A DNA stretch of 64,000 nucleotides from Oculina patagonica (taxonomy: Eukaryota), in contig NC_135766.1 in assembly GCF_052425735.1 (NCBI RefSeq), positions 28,334,001-28,398,000 of the forward strand, in the 5' to 3' direction. This document shows, one piece after another, positions 18,674 to 54,200 of the stretch. Made by a program: the position numbers and the translations under genes. Each line of letters starts with the position of its first letter. The stretch's first letter is position 1. A model generated the notes under the pieces. That model was given only the letters and a program-made list of their open reading frames with translations. It was not told the DNA's origin and did no database searches.

Positions 18674-21600
18674 CTATTGCGTTTCCATTCCAGATTTACT
18701 CAGTGACAGTTCTAGGGCATCAGCAGTTGCCTCTTGTCCCATCTTTTGCCTCCAAAGCACTAAAACCTGATAAACTTGTTCTCTTGAACGATGGGGGTAC
18801 TTCTTTTTCACCTCTCGTATTTCATGTTTGGTAAAACCAAGTTCACGAGCCAATGGAGTCCAGTCTCTTTCACCAATTTTACCAGCAATGTCCACTAGCA
18901 ACTCATTTGGGATGGAAGACTGATTCTCTGACCTAGCCCTAAAAATAGTAAAGCAATAAAAATAACTACATGCATAATCCGCCCCATTGAGAACCAAGCT
19001 CTTCAAATCATTTCCCCAAAGTGCAGTCTGTGAATCTGTGATCTTCGAATTTTATCAATTACCGGTAACAACTTTTTACACAAGAGAGCATGCTCTTTGT
19101 GTTTCCCGTTTAAATGATTACTTTGAACGATTTAATCATAACCCTGCAAACACTAGAAACAATGGAAAACAGCAAAATGGCCCAAAGTCAAACTTGATTT
19201 TGTGCACTGTAGTTTTTATTTAATTTTTAGGTGCCTCGATTTTTTTAATTCACTACCTTTAAGATTTAGAAACTTACATTAATTCTAGACTTTTATTTAG
19301 GAAAGCCTTGGACGATTTTTACTTGTAATTTTTATCATAGCTTTTTTGAGGTTTTAAACTTAGTGCATGATCCCCTTTTTATACGAATTTCATTACAAAT
19401 ATTCAGTAATTTTATTGAAATTTTTTTTTTAATATTTAGTCAGCAGGACCCCGCTGTTGTACTGAAGGATTTTCCTGGGTAAATATTCGGCTATTATTAT
19501 TATTGTAAATTATATAAATATATGTACAAAGGATTGTTTTATGTTTAATAACCCCCCCCCCTCCCCCTCGTCTTCTCTACTAAGCCAACCTTCCCAAAAT
19601 GATAATTTATAGCAAGGAAACATTATAATACTTTAGTGTTACGTCTTACCTACTGTATGGCGTCTGTGCGTCCATTTCTTCTGGTATAATGACAAACTTT
19701 GTGAGTTTGGCGATTTCATCTTCTGGAAGTTGTAAAGCCCAGTTAACCCACTGATCAACATCAATGTACCCTGAGCAAAGAAACAAAGAAAAATATCACA
19801 ATAACATCAATTGGTTAAACATGTTAGGAAAAGCACTGGACTTATTTGGATTGCATTTGATAAGGTTTCTTAGTATAATTTCAGAGGTGATTATAAGAAT
19901 TGAAGCATTCTGATTGGTCTAGAAGCTCAGCTTATGAGGCTATATTCACCCCGCGCGAGGTGATTATAGCTTTCAAGGCTTGGTTACTTAGCCACGCCAC
20001 CTTTGACATCCAGGCAAGTAAACATGGCCGCTTTTGCTGAATGAAAATTTCTTTGATTTGAAAGAAACCCGTCCAAGTCCTGGATATTTTAAACACTGGG
20101 AATTTTTTAAATTAACTACCAACTGAAGGCTTTTGGACCGAAAATATTTTCAAGAGATGGTTCTCAAGGCATTAGAAATGATCGTAAACACGGCGGTTTT
20201 GGCGATCGATGAGAAACTCAGTCAGATCGATTGAGCAAACATTATTTAGTTCTCTTCTCACCGGAGCTACTCATTTTCGAGAGGATTCCCACATTTGCTT
20301 AGAAGTCATCAACAATCATACAAAGGTAACGGACATCTATCTTTCTCATAGGTTTGTTTTGTTCCGTTTTATTGCTTTTACTAAATAAATTCTGATTGTA
20401 ATCGATGAATTAAACTGGTTTACACCGTATGCAAGCGAACACTTGTGTTTGCTGTTTTCTTGTTTGCTATCGTTATTTTTTAAGTTCTTGATGATCGCCT
20501 CTAAAAATTATACTAAAGCAATTATTCGCCTTAGGCTCAGTGATTATTGTTGAATAATCCCCTCGACTTTGTCTCGGGGATTATTCAACAATAATCACTT
20601 CGCCTTCGGCGAATAATTGTTAAATATCAAGTGGTCTCAGATTGAGCCCCTGATCAGAATTTTATGAATTCCTTAAATTAAACTTAAAGATGAATTCCAG
20701 TCCGTACTGCGCAATCTCGGCTGCAATGTTTATGTGAGCCCACACGAAGGATTAATGTTTACAAGCAAAACTAAAAATTACGCGACAAACTTACCTTTTT
20801 CTTCATAATTAACACCAGATATCTTTGCAGAACAAATAATAACGAGTAGAGGAACCTTGACGCTATTTAATTCAAACCGACGTTTAAGGTCATCGGAAAT
20901 TCTTGAACGAAACAAGCTGTAATGGCGGACTAAAAAAACTTCATGTATGCTGTCACCGAAGTGTAACGTTTCAACGAATTCAAAACCAAAACCAAAACAA
21001 ACCCCGAGTCTGCGCAATACGGACTGGAAATCAGCTTTAATTCCCATATTCTAGGGACCAAAAATACATTGTATATTCTATATTTCAGGACCCAACCCTC
21101 CAAGTTAAGACCATTTTAGTTGCCATGGCGACTAAAATTTTGGAGAGGGAAATTGAAACCAAAGTTGCCAGCCTGGCAACTTAAATTGAGAAGAAGGATT
21201 TAAAAAGCATGAGCTTAATTTAGCGACTAAAATTTTATACTGGCGACCAAACTTAAGCAGTCGGTGGCCAAATGGCCACTAAGAAAAAATTATTTTAAAG
21301 GGTTGGCAGGACCATCTCAAATAAGGATCTAGTATAGCAGTCAAAACAGAATGACATGAGAACAATCCTCAAGTAACAGTGATGGAGATGGATTGGGTAT
21401 GTATTGAGGAAAGACTGAAAACAACATGGTACAGGAAAGTAGAGGAATAGCAACGTTTGTGTTAGAGCTCAATCAACAGGACTGCAAAAGACTTGATGAA
21501 ATGGAGAAGCTGTGTTCACTGCACTTTGCACTAGCCGGCACGATGGGGATAAGTTAGTGAGTTTGTAGACAAAGCATTTTATTTTTACAGTGCCTCTCTC

Positions 21601-24600
21601 CAACCAAGAACTTGTTGAGTTGACTCTTTTGGTAACTTTAGATATCAGACTTTCGTGGGATCTTTTAGAGCAATTTATTCTAAATTTTTGTATTAATTTT
21701 ACTAACCTTGGTCTTTGTCATCCAGTGTTTTAACCAGCAACTCTGCTTTGGACTTGGCAGTTTCCTGAAAGAATTAAAATGCACTTATTGTGCCAGTTTG
21801 TTTCCTTGTAGGAGGATGAATGGATATATTGTACAAGGGATCATTGAGAGTTCACTGGTTTTCCTGACTTATTTGGTCAAATAACAGCTCTTACAAGATC
21901 TCACATGAATGGTTCGCTGCCCTTTGAGAGAACGATAGAACACCCAAGCAACAGAAACAATACCCCAGGGGGGGGGCACTCCGGCTTGTTAATGACGGGG
22001 ATGATCGAAGGATTTTTTTGGGTTTGAAATTTTCGATTCCGGGATTTTTTTGGGTTGGAAAATTTGGCAAGTATTTTTTTGGGTATCTTGATTTAGATAG
22101 GGGATTTTTTTGGGTATTAAAAACGAACTACTGTGCCTTGGCGCGGCCTTGGCGTATTTATGGTATGATGAAAAAACAAAACGAGCGTTCTTTGTGTTAT
22201 TTTATTGCACCTCCTGGCAATTTAGGGGTAAATTGACAAGGGATTTTTTGGGGGTTATTTTTGGTTCAGGAATTTTTTTGGGTAATGTCGGAAGACTTAG
22301 TGATTTTTTTAGGTCCTGAATTTTGCCTCCATTCGATCATCCCCGTCATTTACAAGCCGGAGTACCCCCCCTGGGAACAATACACCTAGCCCCCAAAACA
22401 ATAGCAAATGCTATACTAAAGGACCAGTAGAATTTCTGGAACCAATTTTTTATTCCCTTGGAGGTTTGTCAGTAATCAGAATTACACTGTAAGACATATG
22501 CATCAAGTTAGTATACCTACTTCATCAAGACTACTGTCAAGATTCATGATGATTTGTTGTAAGGCAGGAACATCCAAAGGTTGTGATTTGTTAAGCAGCT
22601 TAAAAATACCTGAAGTAGAAACATTTAAAGAAGATATTTTAAGCCGATCTGTTTTTCTTTTCTAAATTTTCAGTGACATCTGTTCACCTTCATCAGAGTT
22701 AGTGAAACTTTCACTAACTCTGATGAAGGTGAACAGATGTCACCGAAAATTTAGAAAAGAAAAAACAGATCGGCTTAAAATATCTTCTTTAAATGTCTTT
22801 TACCGATCGCACTACTGGTCAAATTATTGTTGGATTGTGAGTGTTCAGCCAGGTTCAGCTATTGTAATATATGAGGCTTTCAAAAAGCACTTGTCCCCTG
22901 ATGGCTGATGAAAAGCCTTGGCTACTTCTCACTTAAAGAAAGGAGCTAATCCCAAAGAGTGTTATTCTCAAAGAGTGAGTATATAAATTATTTGGAAAGA
23001 CCTTCCATCTTCTTTGAAAGACTTAAGTGTGTTAGCATTTCCCAAGCAAACAAAACATTACCTCCTGTCAGAACAAAAACTAAATTGATTTTCCATTAAA
23101 CTAAGTTTACTATTGTAACTAACTATTGTTTCTTATAATTATATTAATCACCTGCTTTTTATACTATTTATAACATTAATTGTATGGAGAGCTAACTTGA
23201 AAACCTACCGGTTCATTTAGCTCCCCAGCTTAATACTTAATTAACTACAAATTCCTGTAATACCTTATTTCTATTTTATTAAGAATATGGAAAAAAAAAC
23301 TGTAAACTTTAATATGAGCTGAATAAAAAAATTTAAAAAAAAAAATTATGTTACAAATTAAATATGTGAGGCAGCAAGGCATGCGGAGGCGAGGCATGCA
23401 AGGCGAGGCAGCAAGGCATGCAAGGCAGGAATCCCTAATCCCAATAAATAGGCTAACTGCAAGCTACCTTAGCTAACTGTAGGCTATAACTGGAGTGCTA
23501 TCAAGGTTAAGAAGAATGGCTTGCATGCCTTACTGCCTCACACTTTGTAACAACTCTTTTCCAAAATTGAAATAATTTATTTTAAAAGGAAGATTCTTTC
23601 AAACAGTCGGTTACGCTGCTCAAACCAGCTGCCTCTTTCAAATTTTTAAAACCCCTGGCCATGTGTCATCAAGCTTTGGTGATAAACCTTCAATGAAATA
23701 ATGAGAATAATACCTGCCAGTCTTTTGTCCAATGGTGCAGTTTTCCACCACATCAATACACCAACAAATGAATGGAAAGTCACATTTCCATTCTCATCTC
23801 TTGGAAAAGTCCTCCAAATCTAATATCAATCAAAATAAAAGCAAAACATTTCTAATGACGCTTAACACAACCTTTACAATGTCTTCAGTTTGGTTATTTA
23901 ATAAGCTTTTATAGTCCAGGGTTGTTAAAACAAACTGTCAAAGTTCCTCTGGCTACTTTATATGTTGTCAGTTACTCTGGTCATTGCAATCAGCTCGTGA
24001 CAAACAAGCTCGGCATCACAGCTGTTTCGTCGGTGAACGAAATTATGTGCATTTATTAACATCAAAATCACTAATTAACTCGCTTACGTCATAGTTGTTA
24101 ATTAAGATCCAAACGGAAAGATCAAACGCCGACTCAGATGCTTTCCCTGCCTTTAAAGCTCGTAGTGAAGCCATCGGTTAACAATCTTTGTGAAGCTTTT
24201 GAATATTTGTAAGCTAATCGTTAACCATCTAACTATCGTTACTGTCAGGTTTCGAAAGACTTTGTGTTACCGACACTAATGAATAAACAGAGAGTCCTTT
24301 GAAAACTTTGGCTGGTCACTTTATCTGCGGCAGAGGAAACAACAGCCACCTACTACTCCAGTTGCTTACGCGTACTTCAAAACATTTTGAAACACCTGAA
24401 AAAGTCACACTATAATCCACCAGCTACATCCCGGAGGGGGGGGGGGGGACTCCTGTATGAAACGGACGGGGATGCTCGTCGAAAATTTTGAAAAGAACCC
24501 CTAAAAGAGACCAATCTAGGTGTGGCTCAAGCTTTTCTTGACCCCTAAAAGATACCAAAAAACAAGAGAAAATAAAGGTCCCCTTATTTTCTCTCGCCAA

Positions 24601-26032
24601 AAAAATAAAAATCGAATTTATAGTTGTATATTTCTTCGTGTGTAACCCTAAACGAGACCATTATGACTAAAAATATTGGCGTTTTGCCAGAACACCCTAA
24701 GCGAGACCAAAAATCTGAAATTTAAACCCCTAAGCGAGACGACGAGCATCCCCGTCACTTTCATATGCGAGTCCCCCCCCCCCCCCCGGGAGCTACATCT
24801 ACAGTCTAAATTGTCGTACAGCAAGTACATGCGACAAGGCAGTTTAAGAAGATCGTAAAAGACATTTCAAATGAAAAGGAGCTTCCAAAGATCTTGAAAA
24901 GACCTATTAGTTAGTTAGTAGCACTGACTCATACGAACATTAACCTGTTTCACAAAAGGATCTGTTGCGTAAGGCTGCTGCTGGAATGTCCCATTTGGCA
25001 GGGTTTGTTGATCATTGAGGCCAAGCTGCTGATATCTTGACCAAAGCCGTTCCACTTCGGCTACTGGAACTAAAAAAAAAACACAAAAACAAAAATAAAC
25101 AACAATGATATAACCACCAGTTTCAGTTTAACAAATATTTGTCAAACTCTTGTACAAATTTTTTGCAGATTTTCCCAGCACACATTTTGATATCTGTATT
25201 GATGGAAATGCGGCCTATGGCAGTTCAATTTTGACTAAAACTTCAATCAGTGTCTCTTAGGCAACGTATTTAGGTTAAATCACTTGACATAGGTGACAAA
25301 TTTTGCCAGTTGGTTCCTATTGAAACCTGAGAGAAAGTTTGGGAGAATTCAAAAATTTATATGACAATAAGCAGTTCAACACCCAAAATGTAAACAAATT
25401 TGAAAACTTATTTTTGGGATCCGAAATGTTTGTAAACAACCAATTGTACACTGTACCCTCAGGTACAAACAACAAACAAGTGTACACTGTAACCCTTGTG
25501 ATCAACTGCTCGATTTTAGAATAAGACAAAAGATAAGTTTACAATAGTATTTTAACCACTTGTGCACAACCAGAAACCCCATTCTTGTGATAGTAATCTG
25601 TACCTTTCCCAATTTCACTTCCTAAGCAAGACGTCATTGGCAGATTTTTTGATTCAGTATTATCAAACGTTTCTTCGCCAATCGAACTCAGAGTTGGCGG
25701 CGGAGGTATAGAATTTGTTGGCGTGACAGGATCTTTCTTTGAGAAAAGAGAAAATCGCCGAAAAAAGCTCATTTTCACAGAGAAGTTGGCGCGCGCGGTG
25801 GGGGTAAGCTTACTGTATCTGCTATAGCTGTTTGTTTATTATAAATTATGATTACAGTCATATTGTACATACCAGCATATTCCTCAAGGGCCGTTGGATT
25901 AGTTCTTTCAAACAAAGGCTTCAACACTTCTTCCAAAGAGTTCAAAGGTTGTTCTTGATCTGTGCTTCCCTCCTCTCCGACATCTCTCGCCTGTTCGGGT
26001 TGCTGTTTGTTTTTCTTCCAAAACTTGAGCAT
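18674..26032 (-). CDS. Calcineurin B/CHP-like EF-hand protein with C-terminal death domain (~307 aa, 7 exons)
   Basis: Exons 25873-26032, 24945-25069, 23714-23819, 22521-22609, 21707-21764, 19650-19770 and 18674-18938 join in frame at GT-AG sites. CHP/CnB-like segments: EVERLWSRYQQL, DPFVKQIWRTF..DENGNVTFHSF, PLDKRLAGIFKLL, LDDKDQGYIDVDQW. Death domain: IAGKIGERDWTPLARELGFTKHEI..QVYQVLVLWRQK..ATADAL. Confidence 0.85.
19870..20626. mobile_element. Non-autonomous element with terminal long branched hairpin (Crypton-like, tentative)
   Basis: attctgattgg motif near one end and a ~100-bp hairpin (20520-20619) at the other; same architecture at 61333-62530. Confidence 0.55.
20688..21036. mobile_element. 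MITE with TTAA TSD and AG termini (Kolobok-like)
   Basis: TIRs agatgaattccagtccgtactgcgca / tgcgcaatacggactggaaatcagct; TTAA on both sides. Confidence 0.75.
21964..22375. mobile_element. MITE, CCCAGGGG family, 8-bp TSD
   Basis: Near-identical to 6182-6599; TSD aacaatac. Confidence 0.88.
22621..22796. repeat. 176-bp near-perfect palindrome containing a hammerhead-like core (Penelope-type inverted end)
   Basis: Arms are reverse complements apart from about two differences; CTGATGA-a-GGTGA-acagatg-TCACC-GAAA at 22720-22748. Confidence 0.75.
24430..24790. mobile_element. MITE, CCCGG-poly(G) family, 8-bp TSD
   Basis: TIRs cccggaggggg..gactc / gagtcccc..ccggg; TSD agctacat. Confidence 0.82.
25604..25772 (-). 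CDS. Putative alternative first coding exon of the EF-hand/death-domain gene
   Basis: ATG-initiated MSFFRRFSLFSKKDPVTPTNSIPPPP...GSEIGK ends in a phase-1 AAG|GTACAG donor, matching the phase of exon 24945-25069. Confidence 0.5.
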
Positions 26033-26196
26033 TTAGGACAAGTATCTCAATACAGCGAAAAGTTCTCTTTGGTACTGAATTAATAGTAGGCCTGTTCAAT
26101 TATCCATTGCTCATTTTCTTGCAAATTTTTTATACTCTTGGGAAAAGTTTTGTGTAAATCGCAACTCGCCGCCATTTTTTTGTTTTGCATTTCCTG

Positions 26197-26212
26197 CAAT
26201 GCATTGTGGGAG
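26197..26212. promoter_or_regulatory. ZNF143/Staf-like site in a bidirectional promoter
   Basis: caatgcattgtgggag (reverse complement CTCCCACAATGCATTG) lies between divergent genes; a YY1-like GCCATTTT is adjacent at ~26171. Confidence 0.5.
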
Positions 26213-26628
26213 GTTCTAAGCACCGCTGATCAGAGGGTGCGACTACTGCGATCTGTTTTGGATATTTTGCTACATCAAACAGGCTGTTAGAGTTGTGAGC
26301 CCGGTAAAGACCAGGTAAAGACTCTGTAAAAGGCAAGATTATTGTAATTTTAACTAAATATGTGGTTGAATGTAGTTTTAATCACTCAGAAATATTAATT
26401 TGTTGCTTTGTTCTGTTAAAATGTTACAAAGGGCCCTGCCAGATATTTGGCTATATCATCAACCCAAACATTTTGCAACAACTAAGCCCAGTTTGTTGTT
26501 ATAATTCTCATATCGTTAATTTAAAATAATAATGACACTCGTGCTGCATTATCTTGTTTATTTCAATAGAAATTAGGATAAGGATCACCAAGGGTCACAG
26601 GACGCCCAGGTCCAGTACCTTCAACGCA

Positions 26629-28113
26629 ATGTTCTGGTCTCAGCTGATGCAATTGTGCCAAAAAGCTCCTGTTTGGTTCATTGGTGTCCTTGGAGCTATT
26701 ATTATTTACACAATCCAACAGCTTATCATGGGATATGAGTTTCCGACAATCTGGATCTCTGTAGTGTTAACAGTGGTTTTTATTGCCACCATTGTCAAGA
26801 TGCTGATCTCAGTGCTCAGGACTCGTGTCATTTTCATTGACATGCCTGACCCCGACAACTATGCTGCTGTCTTGCTGCGTGCACATCAATCAAAAGAGAT
26901 TAACAACTGGCTGGCAGTGGTGGGTAGATGGGTGTTACAGAGATTGGGTCACCCTCTGTGTCCACTCTACATTGTCTGCGGCGGACGGCGTGTTAACCTA
27001 GGCTTAGCCCACAAGAACACAACCGAAAGATTTTTTGATCAATCAACAAAGACATGGTTGGAGTGGGACTTTCATCGACATATTGGTCCGCTCCCTGCAG
27101 ATGAAGCTATCATGAAGGATCCAAAGACAGTTGAAGACTCTGCCTTAGTTCTAAAGAAAAACATGTTTGATCTGGACTGCATCTTACAGACGGCTGGGTA
27201 TTCAGATTATGTCCTAGTGAAAGGACATATCGCCAAGCAGATACCATTGTCTTATTCACATCATGCAGATGAATGGCGTTTCTACAATAATGTCGAGAAG
27301 CACTGGGTCACGACAAATGAGTATGACCAACTGTCTGATGAACGCTGTAATGAATTTTACAAATTTCAGGACTTTGACCAGCGAAGGAAACTGGCACGTC
27401 ATTCTATGAACCAATTAACTGGTGTCTCTAATTTTGAGTCAAGTTCCACTGGCTCACACTGGTTAAGCTTAGACCAACTTCACAAACTGCTGCTGAAGTA
27501 TATGACCATTGACATCACAATGGCTGGTCCAGCAACTGACATGGCATACTTAGTAGATAAGTCATTAAATTGGACTCGGAATGTGAGAAAAATAAATGCA
27601 ATGTGGGCAGTCTGTGAACTGGGTCCAAACACCGGCAAGATGAACGTATGTGGGTTGAACTTTAATGAGGCAGCAGATGTTCAGGCTGCACAATACCTAT
27701 CTTCTAAACACTTCCCCAATGCCGCGTTTTCTTTCTTACCCACTGAGACATGCAAACTGACGCCGCAATTTAAAGTGACATGCAAGATGGCCGAGCGCAT
27801 TGATGTGTTGCGATGTCTTGTGGATAAAATAGCTCTTTGGACTCATGTTAAAGGTGGACAAACTGAACCGCTGTTTGACTATTTCATCTGTGAATCCTTA
27901 GATATTACAACAACATTGCAGAAGATGGGTCTTGTCAAAGTCTTTGTGATCCCGAACGCTGATAAGGGTTACATGATTTTGTCGCCCAGTACAAATGAAA
28001 CATTGTTCACTGCCTGGGTGAACCCAAGTGAAATGTTCAGGGTTTTCAGCTGGGGGCAAAATAACATTTCTTTCAATGGATCTCACTGGTCCAGTGCCAA
28101 AGTTGTTGGTTAA
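26629..28113 (+). CDS. Intronless membrane-anchored protein with divergent IU-nucleoside-hydrolase-like fold (~494 aa)
   Basis: Long open ORF whose first ATG (26629) follows a splice acceptor at ~26568. Two N-terminal hydrophobic helices, then IDMPDPDN (cf. DxDxxxDD), AGPATDMA (cf. GPLTNLA), NFNEAADVQAA (cf. EFN..DPEAA) and PLFDY (cf. LHDP). AATAAA at ~28152. Confidence 0.72.
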   Translation: MFWSQLMQLCQKAPVWFIGVLGAIIIYTIQQLIMGYEFPTIWISVVLTVVFIATIVKMLISVLRTRVIFIDMPDPDNYAAVLLRAHQSKEINNWLAVVGRWVLQRLGHPLCPLYIVCGGRRVNLGLAHKNTTERFFDQSTKTWLEWDFHRHIGPLPADEAIMKDPKTVEDSALVLKKNMFDLDCILQTAGYSDYVLVKGHIAKQIPLSYSHHADEWRFYNNVEKHWVTTNEYDQLSDERCNEFYKFQDFDQRRKLARHSMNQLTGVSNFESSSTGSHWLSLDQLHKLLLKYMTIDITMAGPATDMAYLVDKSLNWTRNVRKINAMWAVCELGPNTGKMNVCGLNFNEAADVQAAQYLSSKHFPNAAFSFLPTETCKLTPQFKVTCKMAERIDVLRCLVDKIALWTHVKGGQTEPLFDYFICESLDITTTLQKMGLVKVFVIPNADKGYMILSPSTNETLFTAWVNPSEMFRVFSWGQNNISFNGSHWSSAKVVG

Positions 28114-28209
28114 GATGCTGGTGGCTTCCTCATTAGATCTCATTATTTTGAAATAAATAAAGTTGATCTTACATCTGTTATTGTGTTTTCTGGATACCCA
28201 AAGTGAGTA

Positions 28210-28416
28210 CCTTATTGTTACTTATTTTTGTGGGAACATAATTTCGCAAAATGGCACGGGACTTAATTTTCGCGATTTTGCCAAAAATATGTAATCAACA
28301 TAAAAAAATACCCGTACAATAGAAAACGCTTAAAATGAATTTTCACGGGTCTTTAATTTTCGCGATTTTTTGAAAGTCGCGAAAATTAAGTCCCATGAAA
28401 ATAAGTCACAATAAGG
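28210..28416. mobile_element. TA-flanked MITE (CCTTATT family)
   Basis: TIRs ccttattgttacttatt / aataagtcacaataagg; related to 46576-47091. Confidence 0.7.
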
Positions 28417-30179
28417 TAAGTGTGTGAGTGTGGGTGGGTGGGAGGGAGGAAGGAAGCTAAGAGGGATTGGGCTTGAGAGGGAGGGAGTGAGCTCGGGGGA
28501 GGGGGGGGGACTCGAAAAAGTTTTGTACGGGGAGGCCCCGCCCGGAGATCTAACCCCTTACCCTCTTATATACCATTTTGATAGAAAAGGTACCCCTTTT
28601 GTATACCTTTTATTGCTAAAAGGCACCCCTTTCAAATACCTAGACGACTTCACGTTTACCTAAAACGGGAGGTTTTCTTGTCATTTTTATGTAGCGCTTA
28701 ATAAATTAAGACGATACAGCCAAAAGTTGCGTCTGCTCAAAATATTTAATGCAAAGGCCTTTTAAAATATCAGTATGGCAGATTTCCCTACCCTTTTATA
28801 TACCTAAACTTGTGAAATCCCTTCCCTTTTAAATACCTGAGCCTGAAAAAGGTACCCCTTTCGGGCGGAGCCTCCCCGTATAGGCCAATATAGGGAGTGA
28901 GTACTGGAGGAACTCCCACAATTAAAAAGATGACAGGGGTGCTCGTTGGAAATTATCAAGAACCCCCGAGAAAAGGTACCACAGTCTCACTCTAGGGTGT
29001 GGCTCAATTTCATTGTCACCCCTATTAAAGGAGACCAAAAATCTGTTAAGACAGAGTAACAAATTGTTCCCGTCTTTTTTTGCTCAATACCCTAAAAGAT
29101 GCTGCAATAACTCAAACGGTGGTCTTTTTAAATTTTTACAACCTAAGCAGTACCAATCTACAAAGTCCAGGCCCACCTAGCAGGGATCTAGGAGCGAGAA
29201 TAGTCCTGGTTGTCAATGTCTCGTACTAAAATCAATAGAGAAATAATAATTTATTGATGTGCTCACCACTGAAAAATTCCTATATTTTGTCCAACTGTTC
29301 ATTATTTGTAGGCATGTACATGACATGACCGGCTGCTAAAAGCATCACTGGGGAGGTATCCGGGACAAAATGTGTTCCCATACACAAGGTAGCAAATTCT
29401 TTACAGACTATGCCGCTGGTCATTAGATGCTACTGCGATCTTCAAGGAAAAAAAAAACAACGGGAAAAACGAACGAAAATCGGATGTTTGTCAGACCAGG
29501 GATTTCTCCATGTTCAGAGGTAATTGTTGTCACATTCATGGAATATTTCGCTGCAGTTCTAATGTTAATTTTTTTTGCCTTAAAACCTAAAAATTGTGAA
29601 GTTTGTATTTTTGGTTCTGTGACTGAACTTGATCGGTGGTTCAAGAACAAAGTACTTGATCAGTCAGAAGTCTCACATAAAATAAAAGCTTACATGTAGG
29701 AATGTAGCCCTTTCGCTCTTTTGAAGTATGCCCATTATAAGCTTGTTGATCTTTGAAGCATATCGATCTAAAGGAAAAGTTTATGACTCACTAATCTGTT
29801 CACTGACTCTGTTGTACAGAAGCATCAGTCATCATTTATTCCAGTAAAAAAGCCCCCCCCCCCCCCTTCCCTCTACAATCAGGTCCCTCAACCCAGGTGG
29901 ACATAGGATGCAAATATTCAGAAATTGCATACACTGTTGGAGCTTAAAAGTGTAGCAGAAATCAAGGGTTAAATGTTTTGTCAAGGGGGGCCAATTGATG
30001 TAACAGTACTGTAGTGACTTGAAATTTTCTGTGTCTAATGACGGAAGGTGCCTGCTGTTTTTAGGCTGCCTAACAAGAATATTACCAGCTACTGTGAAGC
30101 TAAGAGAAACTAAACTGTTATCAACTGTTTCTCAGGTAACAAATACAGTATATTATTATCATATTATTGGTCTATAAAT

Positions 30180-33458: not shown

Positions 33459-34493
33459 TTACCTGACTTTACTGCAAAACACTTTCCTTACAAACGATCT
33501 GAAATCGCTCATCTGTACAAGATAAATGATGAAGTTTAGGGCACTGTTTGAAAAGAACATTACAATCGTAAGACATCTTGTTCTATAATCTGATTCAAAA
33601 TCAAGAGAAGGTTTAACCAACATTACATAGGTTGCATAATAGAGTGACGAAGAATAAGGAATAATGAAAGCAAACGTAATTGCAATTAGGAGATATGTTC
33701 CACGGAGTTTTGCTGCCCTCAATTTCGCCTTGATGGCGTTGTTCATCTGAATATTCAATACTCTTTTCCTGTTTCTAGTCCATACGGTTTTTATCAGCGA
33801 AATGTTAATAAAACTCAAGATAAGGCTAGGTAAAATGTGTTGTAGTAGTACATAACTTATAAATATCAGTCGGAACGGTAAATTACTGTTGTCAATTTTA
33901 CAGACAATAGTGTAATGTGTTTCGTCGAGATCGAATCTAATCCCGTTGAACGCCCCCGCGGGTACACATACGAGGAGAAACCCTACAATCCAAGTACCAA
34001 ACACGAGCCTGCGAACAGTAGAGACGCTAAACGTGCGGGGTATAGCCCGAGTTGAAAAATATCTCTCTGTACTTATCGCTATTAAATTATTCATTGTAAT
34101 TGAGGGAAATAACATGTTAAGATATCGAACTGTCTTGCACGCCCAACCATACTGAAAAAGGTCAAACATCAATTGGACATAAACTAAAGGGAGAGAAATT
34201 ATGTTGGAAAGTATATCCGAAAGGGCTAAACTCTTAACATAAAAGTGAAAATTTCTTATAAAAGGACTTGACTGCAAATATGACAGTGTTTTACTTTTTG
34301 ATGAAATAAAATAATAAATGAGGCTATTGCCCACAAAACCAACAGTTCCAACAATGGCCAATAATAAGAAGACCACTAGTTTAGTAGTAGAACTTGCTGG
34401 TATGAACACATAATCTCGACTTGCGTCTGTGTTGTTAAGCATAGCAGACTGGTTGTTGGTAAAGAGATTGGGCGACAGCGGCGAACCGCCCAT
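33459..34493 (-). CDS. Orphan rhodopsin-like (class A) GPCR, single coding exon
   Basis: Seven hydrophobic segments with GN in TM1, LALSD, C..ERY, W in TM4 and NFIIY (NPxxY variant). ATG at 34493 lies just downstream of an acceptor at 34503. Confidence 0.9.
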   Translation of the reverse strand: MGGSPLSPNLFTNNQSAMLNNTDASRDYVFIPASSTTKLVVFLLLAIVGTVGFVGNSLIYYFISSKSKTLSYLQSSPFIRNFHFYVKSLALSDILSNIISLPLVYVQLMFDLFQYGWACKTVRYLNMLFPSITMNNLIAISTERYFSTRAIPRTFSVSTVRRLVFGTWIVGFLLVCVPAGAFNGIRFDLDETHYTIVCKIDNSNLPFRLIFISYVLLQHILPSLILSFINISLIKTVWTRNRKRVLNIQMNNAIKAKLRAAKLRGTYLLIAITFAFIIPYSSSLYYATYVMLVKPSLDFESDYRTRCLTIVMFFSNSALNFIIYLVQMSDFRSFVRKVFCSKVR

Positions 34494-51200: not shown

Positions 51201-54200
51201 GCCAACACCTGACATCCCAGGAGCAGGCCCGTCTAAAGCCTAGTCGCGATAGATTTGTCCACAGCTGGTTGTTTGACAAGATGCTCAACTTTTGCCATAA
51301 AACGGAAATTGCTTGGCTGGTTTATGAGGAAGGAAAGGGCATGTTTTGCTATCTGTGCAAGAAACACAACACAGAAAATCAATAAAACAAGTCCAAGGTT
51401 TATAATGCAACCCCGTGCATACGCTTTAAGAAGTCAGCTGTTCAAGAACATTTAGCAACTCAGCAACACAAGGATGCTGTTGGAGCTGAAATGTTAGCAA
51501 GGGTGTCAGTGTTTCATAAAGAGATACAGGAAAGGAAAATAGTGAAAGATGATGTCATGTTTAAGGCTTTCTATGCGGCATACTGGCTTGTCAAAGAGGA
51601 AATTTCCAACCAAAAGTTTTCATCTCTTCTAGATCTGCTTAAATTGCTTGGGCTCGATCACATGAAGCATTTCCAGTATTCTTCACAGGGTTCTTTAAGA
51701 GAAATCTTTTTGGCACTGGGCTCTGCATTGCTCGAAAAGTTGTTGGAAAAGGTGAAGAAAGCAGGCTGCTATGGCTTGCTTACTGATGAAGTCAGTGATG
51801 TTACAGTCATGGAAATGCTTATCACCTTCATCCAGTACTTCAACAAAGAAACAGAGCAAGCTGAGACAAGCTTCTTGTTTATCGAAGACGTTCTAAAGAA
51901 CTCCAATTCAGCCAATGCAGAAACCATCTTTACAGTCCTCACAAGCCAGCTAGCTGAGTTTGGTCCAGAGATACAGAAGTGCAGTTCATTGGTTTCAGAT
52001 GGTGCAAGTGTTATGACCGGTGCATGTGGTGGAGTGGCAACCCGTCTGAAGCAACTTAATCCTCAAATGATTTCTCTGCACTGCTTGTGCCATAAGCTTG
52101 CATTAGCCTGCACCGACACTAGCAGCCAAATAGAATACATACGAAATGTTGAGCTCTGGCTAAGGCAGCTTTGGAAACTGTTTGAAAATTCACCGAAGCG
52201 TACAGCAACGTACTTGAAAGTACAAATAAATTTGAAATCCTTAGTCCTCTCTGATAAGAGTAAGAAGGTTGTAACAAAGAAGATAAAGAAGGCCTGCCAG
52301 ACCAGATGGCTGTCTTTTGATGCAGCTACAAGTGCCATTTATGAAGATTACAATGCATTATTGCAGACTTTAAGGCAGCTGAAAGAGACTGATGCAGTCG
52401 CTTCTGGCCTCCTCAGCAAGATAGATTCCTCCAAGTTTATTGGAACAATTTACATTCTTAAAGAAATTCTTCCTGTCCTTTCCAACTTGAGCAAGAACTT
52501 TCAACGTGGGCAAGTCAACTTCTCACACATCCAGCCGTCCATTAGTTACACCTTGCAGAAGCTGACTGAAATTGCAGATTCCCAGTCCCCAATAACAGCC
52601 CTGAAGCGAGACATAGAAGGACGCCTGGCTATATCTGGGGTAAACTTGAGTACTGCCACAGAAAATCAGCTTACCAATCTTCTTTCAAAATATGTTACAG
52701 CCCTGAAGGAGAACATTCACCACCGGTTTGATGATGATCTCCCTGTTGTCAGTGCCTTGTCCATTTTCAACCCATTGACCTTGCCCAAGCCAGGGTCTGG
52801 TGCATTTAAGGAGCACGGAGCAAATAAGGCACAGACATTGGCAAAGCACTTCTTCAGTGAACCAGCCAAACAAGAGCAGCTACTAGCTGAATGGGAGAAA
52901 TTTAAATTTGATATGGATGCTTGGAAGCAAGAGATCCCAGAAGAGGTGAAGGAGAGCCACCTTGAAACAGCAACAGAGTGGTGCCTTAAACGACTGATCT
53001 CTCTCAAGACATCTTACAGCATTGTGTTTCCTGCTCTGACAAACATTGCTGAAGTCTGTTTGTCAATGCCCGTTTCTAACGCATGGCCGGAAAGAGGTGG
53101 CAGCGCCCTGAAACGTATCAAGACTCGGCTGAGAAACCGACTAAATGTTACCATGCTCCAGTCACTTCTAATGGTCTCTATTAATGGTCCCAAGGTCGGA
53201 ACCACAGAATGTGAATCCCTAGTCACAGCCGCAGTGGAGAAGTGGCAAGCCCAGAAAAAGAGGCGAAAAATGCCTAAGGCAGTGTCGTCAACCTCAGTTG
53301 CAGCCTCTTCCTCCACACAAGTGGCTGTGATTGAGACAGCTGATGCCTGTGTGCAAACACACCCGCCCCAGGCTCACCCCGCTGGTGATAATAGAGATGG
53401 AGAATTAGAGGTGCAGATTGCTAGTGCCGCCCTGAACCTGACCGATGATGCTTTGTGCCAAGAAGAAGCAGACTCTGATTATGATAGTGATTGTGACGTC
53501 GACGATGTTGATGATGCCTTACTTTTCTAAATTACATGACTTGGTTTTGATTTTGTTCTATAGAATAGTCTATCAAATTGAAGCATAAAGAACTGAAACA
53601 ATCAAATTGTTTGTAACACTAGCACAGACAAAGGACTTTTATCTTTTTACTGTACCTTCCCAAAGCAAATTGTTTGTGAATCAAATTGCAATTAACTTTT
53701 AAAACGTGACTAGGCAGCGTGATGTAAAATAAGACTGAGCTAAATTTGTCAAAGAACAACAAGTTGAACTTTTTAAGTGGATTTTTCACTGAATTTTACC
53801 ATAATGAACATCTGAAAATTCCCCTTGAAAACATGCTCAGATTGCAGGAAATGGCCTCTAAGCAACTGTATATTTCAAAAATTTCTGGGGGAGCATGCCC
53901 CAAGACCCCCCTAGAAGGGGGCGCTTTGCGCCCCAAAACGCACACTTCGCGTGCTAGATGATCTACTAGCCGGCTATTCTATTGACATCAGCCGGCTACT
54001 ATAAATTCTAATGACAACCCTGCGTTTAATCGAGAAAATACGACGAAGTCAACAAACACAACAGAGAGTTTCTCTGGTTGATTAAAAATCCTCACTGAAA
54101 TAAAGTAAAAAAGTGAAATAGCATAATCGTAACATTGGTTGGTATTGCGTCTGGCTTTTTCTTTCTTTCTTTCTTTTTTTTTTTTTGGGGGGGGGGGGGT

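Follow-up and report, generated by a model that had tools for sequence, protein, structure and literature searches.

A divergent pair of coral genes for an EF-hand/death-domain protein and a nucleoside-hydrolase-like protein in Oculina patagonica

Two genes diverge from a short intergenic region within a stretch of 64,000 nucleotides of the Oculina patagonica genome (NCBI RefSeq assembly GCF_052425735.1, contig NC_135766.1, positions 28,334,001 to 28,398,000 of the forward strand; hereafter the window). The minus-strand gene encodes an EF-hand body joined to a death domain, and its plus-strand neighbour encodes a pair of hydrophobic helices followed by a nucleoside-hydrolase-like domain. An original prediction made from the sequence had proposed that the two form a co-regulated adaptor-plus-enzyme module in signalling or immunity. 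Coordinates are positions in the window unless another locus is named.

Gene models and the intergenic promoter

The EF-hand/death-domain gene runs on the minus strand from 26032 to 18674 and has seven exons, with all introns of the GT-AG type. The model was built from seven collinear DNA blocks that are conserved against four other coral loci, and its 307-aa product equals RefSeq LOC144666841 isoform X2 (P0099, 305 aa) except for a 6-nt alternative acceptor. Exon 1 (25873..26032, -) begins with the ATG at 26032 and is placed by both the model and the match to P0099. Exon 2 (24945..25069, -) encodes the N-terminal helix and the EF-hand 1 region, exon 3 (23714..23819, -) encodes EF-hand 2 with the loop FPRDENGNVTFHSF, and exon 4 (22521..22609, -) encodes a degenerate EF-hand 3. 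EF-hand 4 starts in exon 5 (21707..21764, -) and is completed, together with a linker, by exon 6 (19650..19770, -). The death domain and the stop codon lie in exon 7 (18674..18938, -), where a second acceptor is found 6 nt downstream at 18932. Exon 5 agrees with the independent Desmophyllum gene model P0072, where EF-hand exons and death-domain exon are likewise connected.

Transcript evidence comes from the runs X1, X2 and X5, which we take to be RNA because their contigs are spliced. The joint 23819/24945 is present in all three, the joint 22609/23714 is likewise present in three RNA runs, and a single 985-nt contig covers exons 3 to 1 and continues into the 5' untranslated region (UTR). This 5'UTR reaches at least 26180 (contigs 25873-26122 in X1 and 25873-26180 in X5). 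An alternative first coding exon (25604..25772, -) shares the splice phase of exon 1 and has a separate ATG, at 25772. An X5 contig spanning 25604-25821 ends precisely on the predicted GT donor of this exon, and the block is kept in the coral loci L002, L004 and L005. In Stylophora, a 1163-nt Logan contig holds a complete coding sequence of 313 aa. The gene is single copy in the 529-Mb Oculina genome. The RefSeq match, the spliced contigs and the Pfam and profile matches given below bear out the earlier description of a gene with its ATG at 26032 that encodes an EF-hand body plus a death domain.

The hydrolase-like gene on the opposite strand is also single copy in Oculina. Its coding sequence (26629..28113, +; 494 aa) is intronless, is spanned by RNA contigs at 26568-28207, and has orthologues with 62-88% identity that all apparently come from stony corals. 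A tentative 5'UTR exon of undefined start lies at 26289..26332 (+) and is followed by a GC-AG intron (26333-26569). The evidence for this intron is one X1 contig with a depth of 5.4 that joins about 26332 to 26570; if the intron is real, then only the coding part of the gene may be free of introns. In the same 5'UTR region an 11-bp unit (GGTAAAGACCA-like) occurs twice at 26300-26322, and one X1 RNA contig that apparently omits one unit suggests that this repeat is polymorphic in length.

A distance of 596 bp separates the two start codons. RNA contigs of the minus-strand gene extend to 26180 and those of the plus-strand gene begin at or before 26289, which leaves a gap of ~110 bp between contig ends that are not mapped transcription start sites. 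Divergent genes with starts <1 kb apart are classed here as a bidirectional-promoter pair, and these two belong to that class. A conserved core promoter block at 26119..26211 is kept in Oculina, L002, L004, L005, Stylophora and Pocillopora. It contains an octamer-like element TTGCAAAT (~26119-26126), a YY1-like element GCCGCCAT (26168-26175) and a ZNF143-SBS-like element TCCCACAATGCATTGC (26196-26211, -), all of which are putative sites assigned by their resemblance to motif consensuses. A search with the ZNF143-SBS consensus gives one match in the window, this TCCCACAATGCATTGC, against 0.05 expected; L004 and L005 have the element unchanged, and the others have slight variants of it. The claim that the genes diverge from a promoter of under 600 bp therefore agrees with the spacing of the ATGs and the approach of the contigs, and the ZNF143-like site that had been noted there is this single match within the block conserved in six species. 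L004 also carries a tandem second hydrolase-like open reading frame (ORF; P0014, L004:14252-15847), and a partial copy of the promoter block (11992-12122) is located ~2 kb upstream of this second copy.

Both genes are represented at modest depth in the same three RNA runs; contig depths from three runs show expression and cannot measure co-expression, and a raw poly-A run has ~10 reads on the stretch. Contig depth is ~10-30 on exons versus ~1000-4500 at 24450-24849 and 170-400 at 28250-28449. These two stretches are rich in loose contig ends and are most likely transcribed interspersed repeats, one in intron 2 of the EF-hand/death-domain gene and the other just 3' of the hydrolase-like gene.

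The EF-hand/death-domain protein

The domain encoded by the last exon scores 55.8 bits against the Pfam death-domain family (PF00531), well above the cut-off of 22.6 (E 5e-15). Pfam recognises Death in 9/9 family members and EF-hand_7 in 8/9. When a profile of nine coral orthologues is compared with solved structures, the C-terminal part matches the death domains of CRADD (5.6e-9), RIPK1 (1e-7) and FADD (~3e-6), as well as that of ankyrin. CRADD/RAIDD, RIPK1 and FADD resemble the coral protein in this domain, but CARD, DED or kinase partner domains are absent from the coral protein and an EF-hand body takes their place. This body (positions 50-195, ~140 residues) matches CBL4/SOS3 (2e-8), CBL2, calcineurin B (~1e-6) and CHP1 (~2e-4), and these profile matches identify it as a four-EF-hand body similar to the calcineurin B-like/CHP family.

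The resemblance to calcineurin B, CBL (SOS3) and CHP1 is one of profile similarity over those ~140 residues and does not extend to the metal-binding loops. None of the nine members matches a PROSITE-type EF loop pattern, and the four loops of the Oculina protein (LGLNDQQTLPNGTF, FPRDENGNVTFHSF, FKLLNKSQPLDVPAL and LDDKDQGYIDVDQW) all have no acidic residue at loop position 12. Because the loops lack canonical ligands, Ca2+ binding by this body is probably weak or lost. The glycine at position 2 that would permit myristoylation is also absent, with N-termini that read MLKF or MFKF. No member of the calcineurin B, CBL and CHP1 families is known to have a C-terminal death domain of the kind found here. 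A literature search for EF-hand/death-domain fusions in corals turned up no relevant description.

The protein is probably soluble and of the adaptor type. Its EF-hand body would clamp an amphipathic helix of a target, as calcineurin B, CHP and CBL proteins do. The C-terminal death domain would then recruit further death-domain proteins.

Two observations concern the distribution of these domains. The ESM Atlas cluster that comes nearest to P0099 when language-model features are compared (score 0.94, 187 features in common) is one of mostly chordate 'uncharacterized protein' entries of 269 aa, and 97% of its members have a Death domain. As a lead only, this cluster indicates that the architecture may also occur outside corals. 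In another coral assembly (L016), copies of the death-domain exon are found at 1577-1837 and 9959-10219, 8.4 kb apart, with no EF-hand exons detectable between them.

The nucleoside-hydrolase-like protein and its relatives

The hydrolase-like protein begins with a predicted membrane hairpin (26668..26817, +) made of two hydrophobic helices at residues ~14-35 and 39-63. Kyte-Doolittle peaks fall near residues 24 and 50, and an AlphaFold2 (AF2) model places helices at 2-32 and 39-62. Basic residues come after helix 2, so the positive-inside rule suggests that the remainder of the protein is cytosolic. The hairpin would thus hold the protein at the membrane with its nucleoside-hydrolase-fold domain facing the cytosol.

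This domain (26818..28110, +) is a divergent one. The Oculina protein scores 16.7 bits against PF01156 (IU_nuc_hydro), below the gathering threshold of 34.2, and its distant relatives score 20-35 bits, with IU_nuc_hydro matches in seven of the ten that were scanned and two of these at the cut-off. A 17-sequence profile matches 23 solved structures, all of them nucleoside hydrolases (best 4.8e-5). The AF2 model from a 40-sequence alignment has a pLDDT of 92.7 and a pTM of 0.92; it replaced a poor first model (pLDDT 54) that used ten close orthologues only. Foldseek finds 107 matches to this model in the PDB at E<=1e-3 with probability 1.0. Those listed are all nucleoside or riboside hydrolases or the effector XopQ, which has the same fold and is represented in one structure with ADP-ribose. 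The model and these matches assign the protein to the nucleoside-hydrolase fold. TM-scores are just 0.45-0.6 because the coral domain has ~100 extra residues. The earlier description of two transmembrane helices plus an IU-nucleoside-hydrolase-like domain corresponds to the helix pair and fold found here.

The known enzymes of PF01156 (Trypanosoma IAG-NH, E. coli RihA/YeiK) and XopQ thus share their fold with the coral domain, and the central GPxT and (E/N)FNxxxDxxAA motifs of the PF01156 hydrolases can be aligned with it. In HMMER and hhalign alignments, GPAT303 corresponds to GPLT and NFN346EAAD350VQAA corresponds to EFNxxxDPEAA. The alignment by hhalign to canonical Oculina hydrolases covers the central motifs only (probability 13.7), and the mapping of N- and C-terminal catalytic residues is a positional reading that does not derive from it. 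The N-terminal DxDxxxDD metal-/ribose-binding motif, which appears as IIDCDAGIDDA in Oculina's own PF01156 paralogues, is not present in the coral sequence FIDMPDPDNYAA, where DxxDxDN (IDMPDPDN) is found. The sub-threshold score, this altered motif, the extra residues and the membrane hairpin all set the coral protein apart from the PF01156 hydrolases. Within the nucleoside-hydrolase superfamily it represents a divergent subfamily, which falls outside PF01156 on two counts.

Fourteen positions are invariant across corals and distant relatives: D71, D74, D76, N77, H212, P301, T303, F345, N346, D350, T372, W404, F416 and D417. To judge from the sequences, this pattern looks like that of a preserved active site with a changed substrate or metal site. 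The domain most likely cleaves or binds some ribosyl N-glycoside, since it retains the fold together with the central Thr and the ribose-binding motif (E/N)FN...D, and its N-terminal Asp motif is remodelled. The protein might instead be a pseudoenzyme that binds a ligand without N-glycosidase action. The change from DxDxxxDD to DxxDxDN, which by positional reading puts Asn at the position of the canonical last Asp, is compatible with such a loss, as are the PF01156 score under threshold, the ~100 residues beyond the canonical enzymes and the low TM-scores. However, 14 polar or aromatic positions are invariant between corals and viral or metagenomic relatives at ~20-25% identity, and they include the Thr of GPxT, the Asn of FN, D350 and D417 in the pattern expected of a preserved active site. 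We consider a non-catalytic role unlikely.

Oculina also has three canonical PF01156 genes within 36 kb (G000:C3:19940511-19976108), each in two coding blocks. The hydrolase-like gene adds to these ordinary nucleoside hydrolases and does not replace them.

An exhaustive HMM search for the hydrolase-like protein among 1.84 billion representatives yielded 44 proteins. It returns coral orthologues and then jumps to relatives at 20-27% identity. Three of the non-coral relatives can be placed: a Yasminevirus protein (A0A5K0UB75/VBB18754.1; P0033), P0045 and P0023. The Yasminevirus protein is the best match among viral structure models (3e-18, TM-score 0.62-0.65). P0045 is encoded on a gene-dense 134-kb metagenome scaffold along with Rpb2, asparagine synthase, YqaJ, XRN, ribonucleotide reductase (RNR) small subunit and a helicase, and P0023, also a metagenome protein, is found next to C48 and M10 peptidases. 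We read both contexts as giant-virus-like. The three proteins belong to the same divergent subfamily as the coral protein and have the same invariant residues, and several metagenomic relatives also have hydrophobic N-termini. They differ from the coral protein in that identity is only 20-27% and the corals sit on a long stem. The other relatives are mostly unnamed metagenome proteins, with one from a protist set, and the AlphaFold DB and Atlas contain uncharacterised ascomycete look-alikes. In an unrooted maximum-likelihood tree, the corals form one clade with a stem of 2.41 changes per site.

This long stem and the intronless coding sequence make horizontal acquisition of the gene plausible. 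A specific version would have the stony-coral ancestor take the gene from a giant virus (Nucleocytoviricota), with the gene later coming to lie beside the EF-hand/death-domain promoter in robust corals. The contrast between an intronless coding sequence and a seven-exon neighbour fits this account. So do the gap in the HMM search between coral orthologues and relatives at 20-27% identity, the viral or giant-virus-like setting of three relatives, the rank of Yasminevirus as best viral structural match, the single coral clade on its very long stem, and the branching of unlinked lineages at the base of that clade. Against it stand the low identity and the lack of a root in the tree, in which nesting of the corals within a viral clade is not seen. 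Most relatives are unnamed metagenome proteins, with one from the protist set and the fungal look-alikes besides, the gene has an apparent 5'UTR intron, and viruses frequently acquire host genes. A giant-virus source is thus possible but, in our judgment, not the probable one. If it is correct, then the gene would be a clean example of how an animal lineage has domesticated a gene of giant viruses. A literature search on nucleoside hydrolases in giant viruses gave nothing relevant. This nucleoside-hydrolase subfamily, common to stony corals and giant viruses, is without its own Pfam family and is misnamed in public records.

One such name may have originated in corals. The Yasminevirus protein is called 'putative Dynactin subunit 4', yet it matches the hydrolase-like part only. 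Gene models from Stylophora (1029 aa, L006:1-9677) and Pocillopora (690 aa, pdam_00002599, L008:10001-17705) appear to fuse the hydrolase-like ORF with DCTN4, a fusion that was checked exon by exon for the Pocillopora protein only. The viral name looks like an annotation error that spread from the fused coral models.

Linkage across corals and interpretation of the pair

The head-to-head pair occurs in six genomes: Oculina, L002, L004, L005, Stylophora (L006) and Pocillopora (L008). In the maximum-likelihood tree, the hydrolase-like proteins of these linked loci form one supported clade (97/100), and other coral sequences branch outside it. No EF-hand/death-domain exon is found within 10 kb upstream of the hydrolase-like gene at L003 or within 7.3 kb upstream at L017. 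At L013 and L014 the EF-hand/death-domain gene is complete, and the 2.5-3 kb examined upstream of it contain no hydrolase-like ORF; at L013 a retrotransposon ORF stands there instead. We suspect that L003, L017 and L013/L014 are complex-clade corals. Linkage wherever both genes occur, as would be expected of a functional module, is therefore not observed. The original prediction had named absence of linkage in related species as an outcome that would refute it, and this is the outcome in the second clade.

Within the linked clade, synteny extends to two fatty-acid elongase (ELO) genes on the side of the death domain (7178-7576, -, and 16663-17010, + in Oculina), which implies that part of the conservation of the pair is general microsynteny. 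On the other side, the hydrolase-like gene has DCTN4 as its neighbour in Pocillopora, Stylophora and L002. DCTN4 was considered as a conserved right-hand neighbour and rejected, as none of its exons could be detected in the Oculina window and the downstream position has an intronless rhodopsin-type GPCR ORF (33459-34502, -; 7tm_1 3e-14). Because the far flank differs in this way, the pair must have survived at least one rearrangement. A shared promoter by itself would account for this survival.

We think it probable that the locus is a real, expressed, divergent pair of single-copy, coral-restricted genes with one compact bidirectional promoter, and that the pairing is lineage-specific and not an obligate module. 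Adjacency would then be an arrangement of one coral clade that the shared promoter maintains. It might have originated when an intronless gene was acquired and came to sit next to a promoter that was already there and able to fire both ways. What the original prediction said of the two genes and their shared promoter stands on this account, but its co-regulated adaptor-plus-enzyme immune module is not supported, with linkage absent at L003, L017 and L013/L014. Several points weigh against our interpretation. A shared promoter implies some co-regulation, and the retention of the pair while the far flank changed within the linked clade is compatible with selection on the pair. The unlinked loci could be paralogues or could have intergenic spans longer than the DNA examined. 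Fungal and protist relatives exist too, and any virus-host transfer could have run in either direction.

In a true module, one partner would recruit or control the other in a signalling or immune role, whether the death-domain adaptor acts on the membrane hydrolase or the hydrolase on the adaptor. Its attractions are a compact shared promoter with conserved motifs, linkage that is kept in six genomes despite the changed far flank, and the apparent restriction of both genes to stony corals in the searches that were run. In addition, one protein of the nucleoside-hydrolase fold is the effector XopQ, for which a crystal structure with ADP-ribose exists, and the probable cytosolic location of the hydrolase domain is a topology that fits a cytosolic adaptor. 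Nevertheless, the two are not neighbours in the other coral clade, the syntenic ELO neighbours assign part of the conservation to general microsynteny, and the analysis yielded nothing that points to an immune role or to binding. Bidirectional pairs are also common and often functionally unrelated. A complex prediction with hydrolase residues 60-494 and the EF-hand/death-domain protein returned a score of 0.00, which is no answer and speaks neither for nor against binding. We regard a module of this kind as quite improbable. Less probable still, and to us a long shot, is a combined scenario in which a virus-derived, membrane-anchored N-glycosidase of an undescribed subfamily was, in robust corals, brought under the promoter of a calcineurin-B-like death-domain adaptor that is insensitive to Ca2+, so that the two would serve a joint, coral-specific pathway of nucleotide/ADP-ribose signalling or cell death. 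The pairing looks like ordinary promoter sharing and is not to be taken as a discovered immune module. Each gene is in its own right an uncharacterised, lineage-restricted variant of a well-known superfamily.

Farther along the window, a 679-aa ORF with a hAT dimerisation domain (51491-53530, +) is a transposase relic. In Pocillopora, a gene for a 713-aa Mab-21 protein (L008:19289-21430) lies ~1.6 kb past the fused hydrolase-like/DCTN4 model and is followed by a JmjC/cupin gene. Mab-21 is the domain family that includes cGAS.

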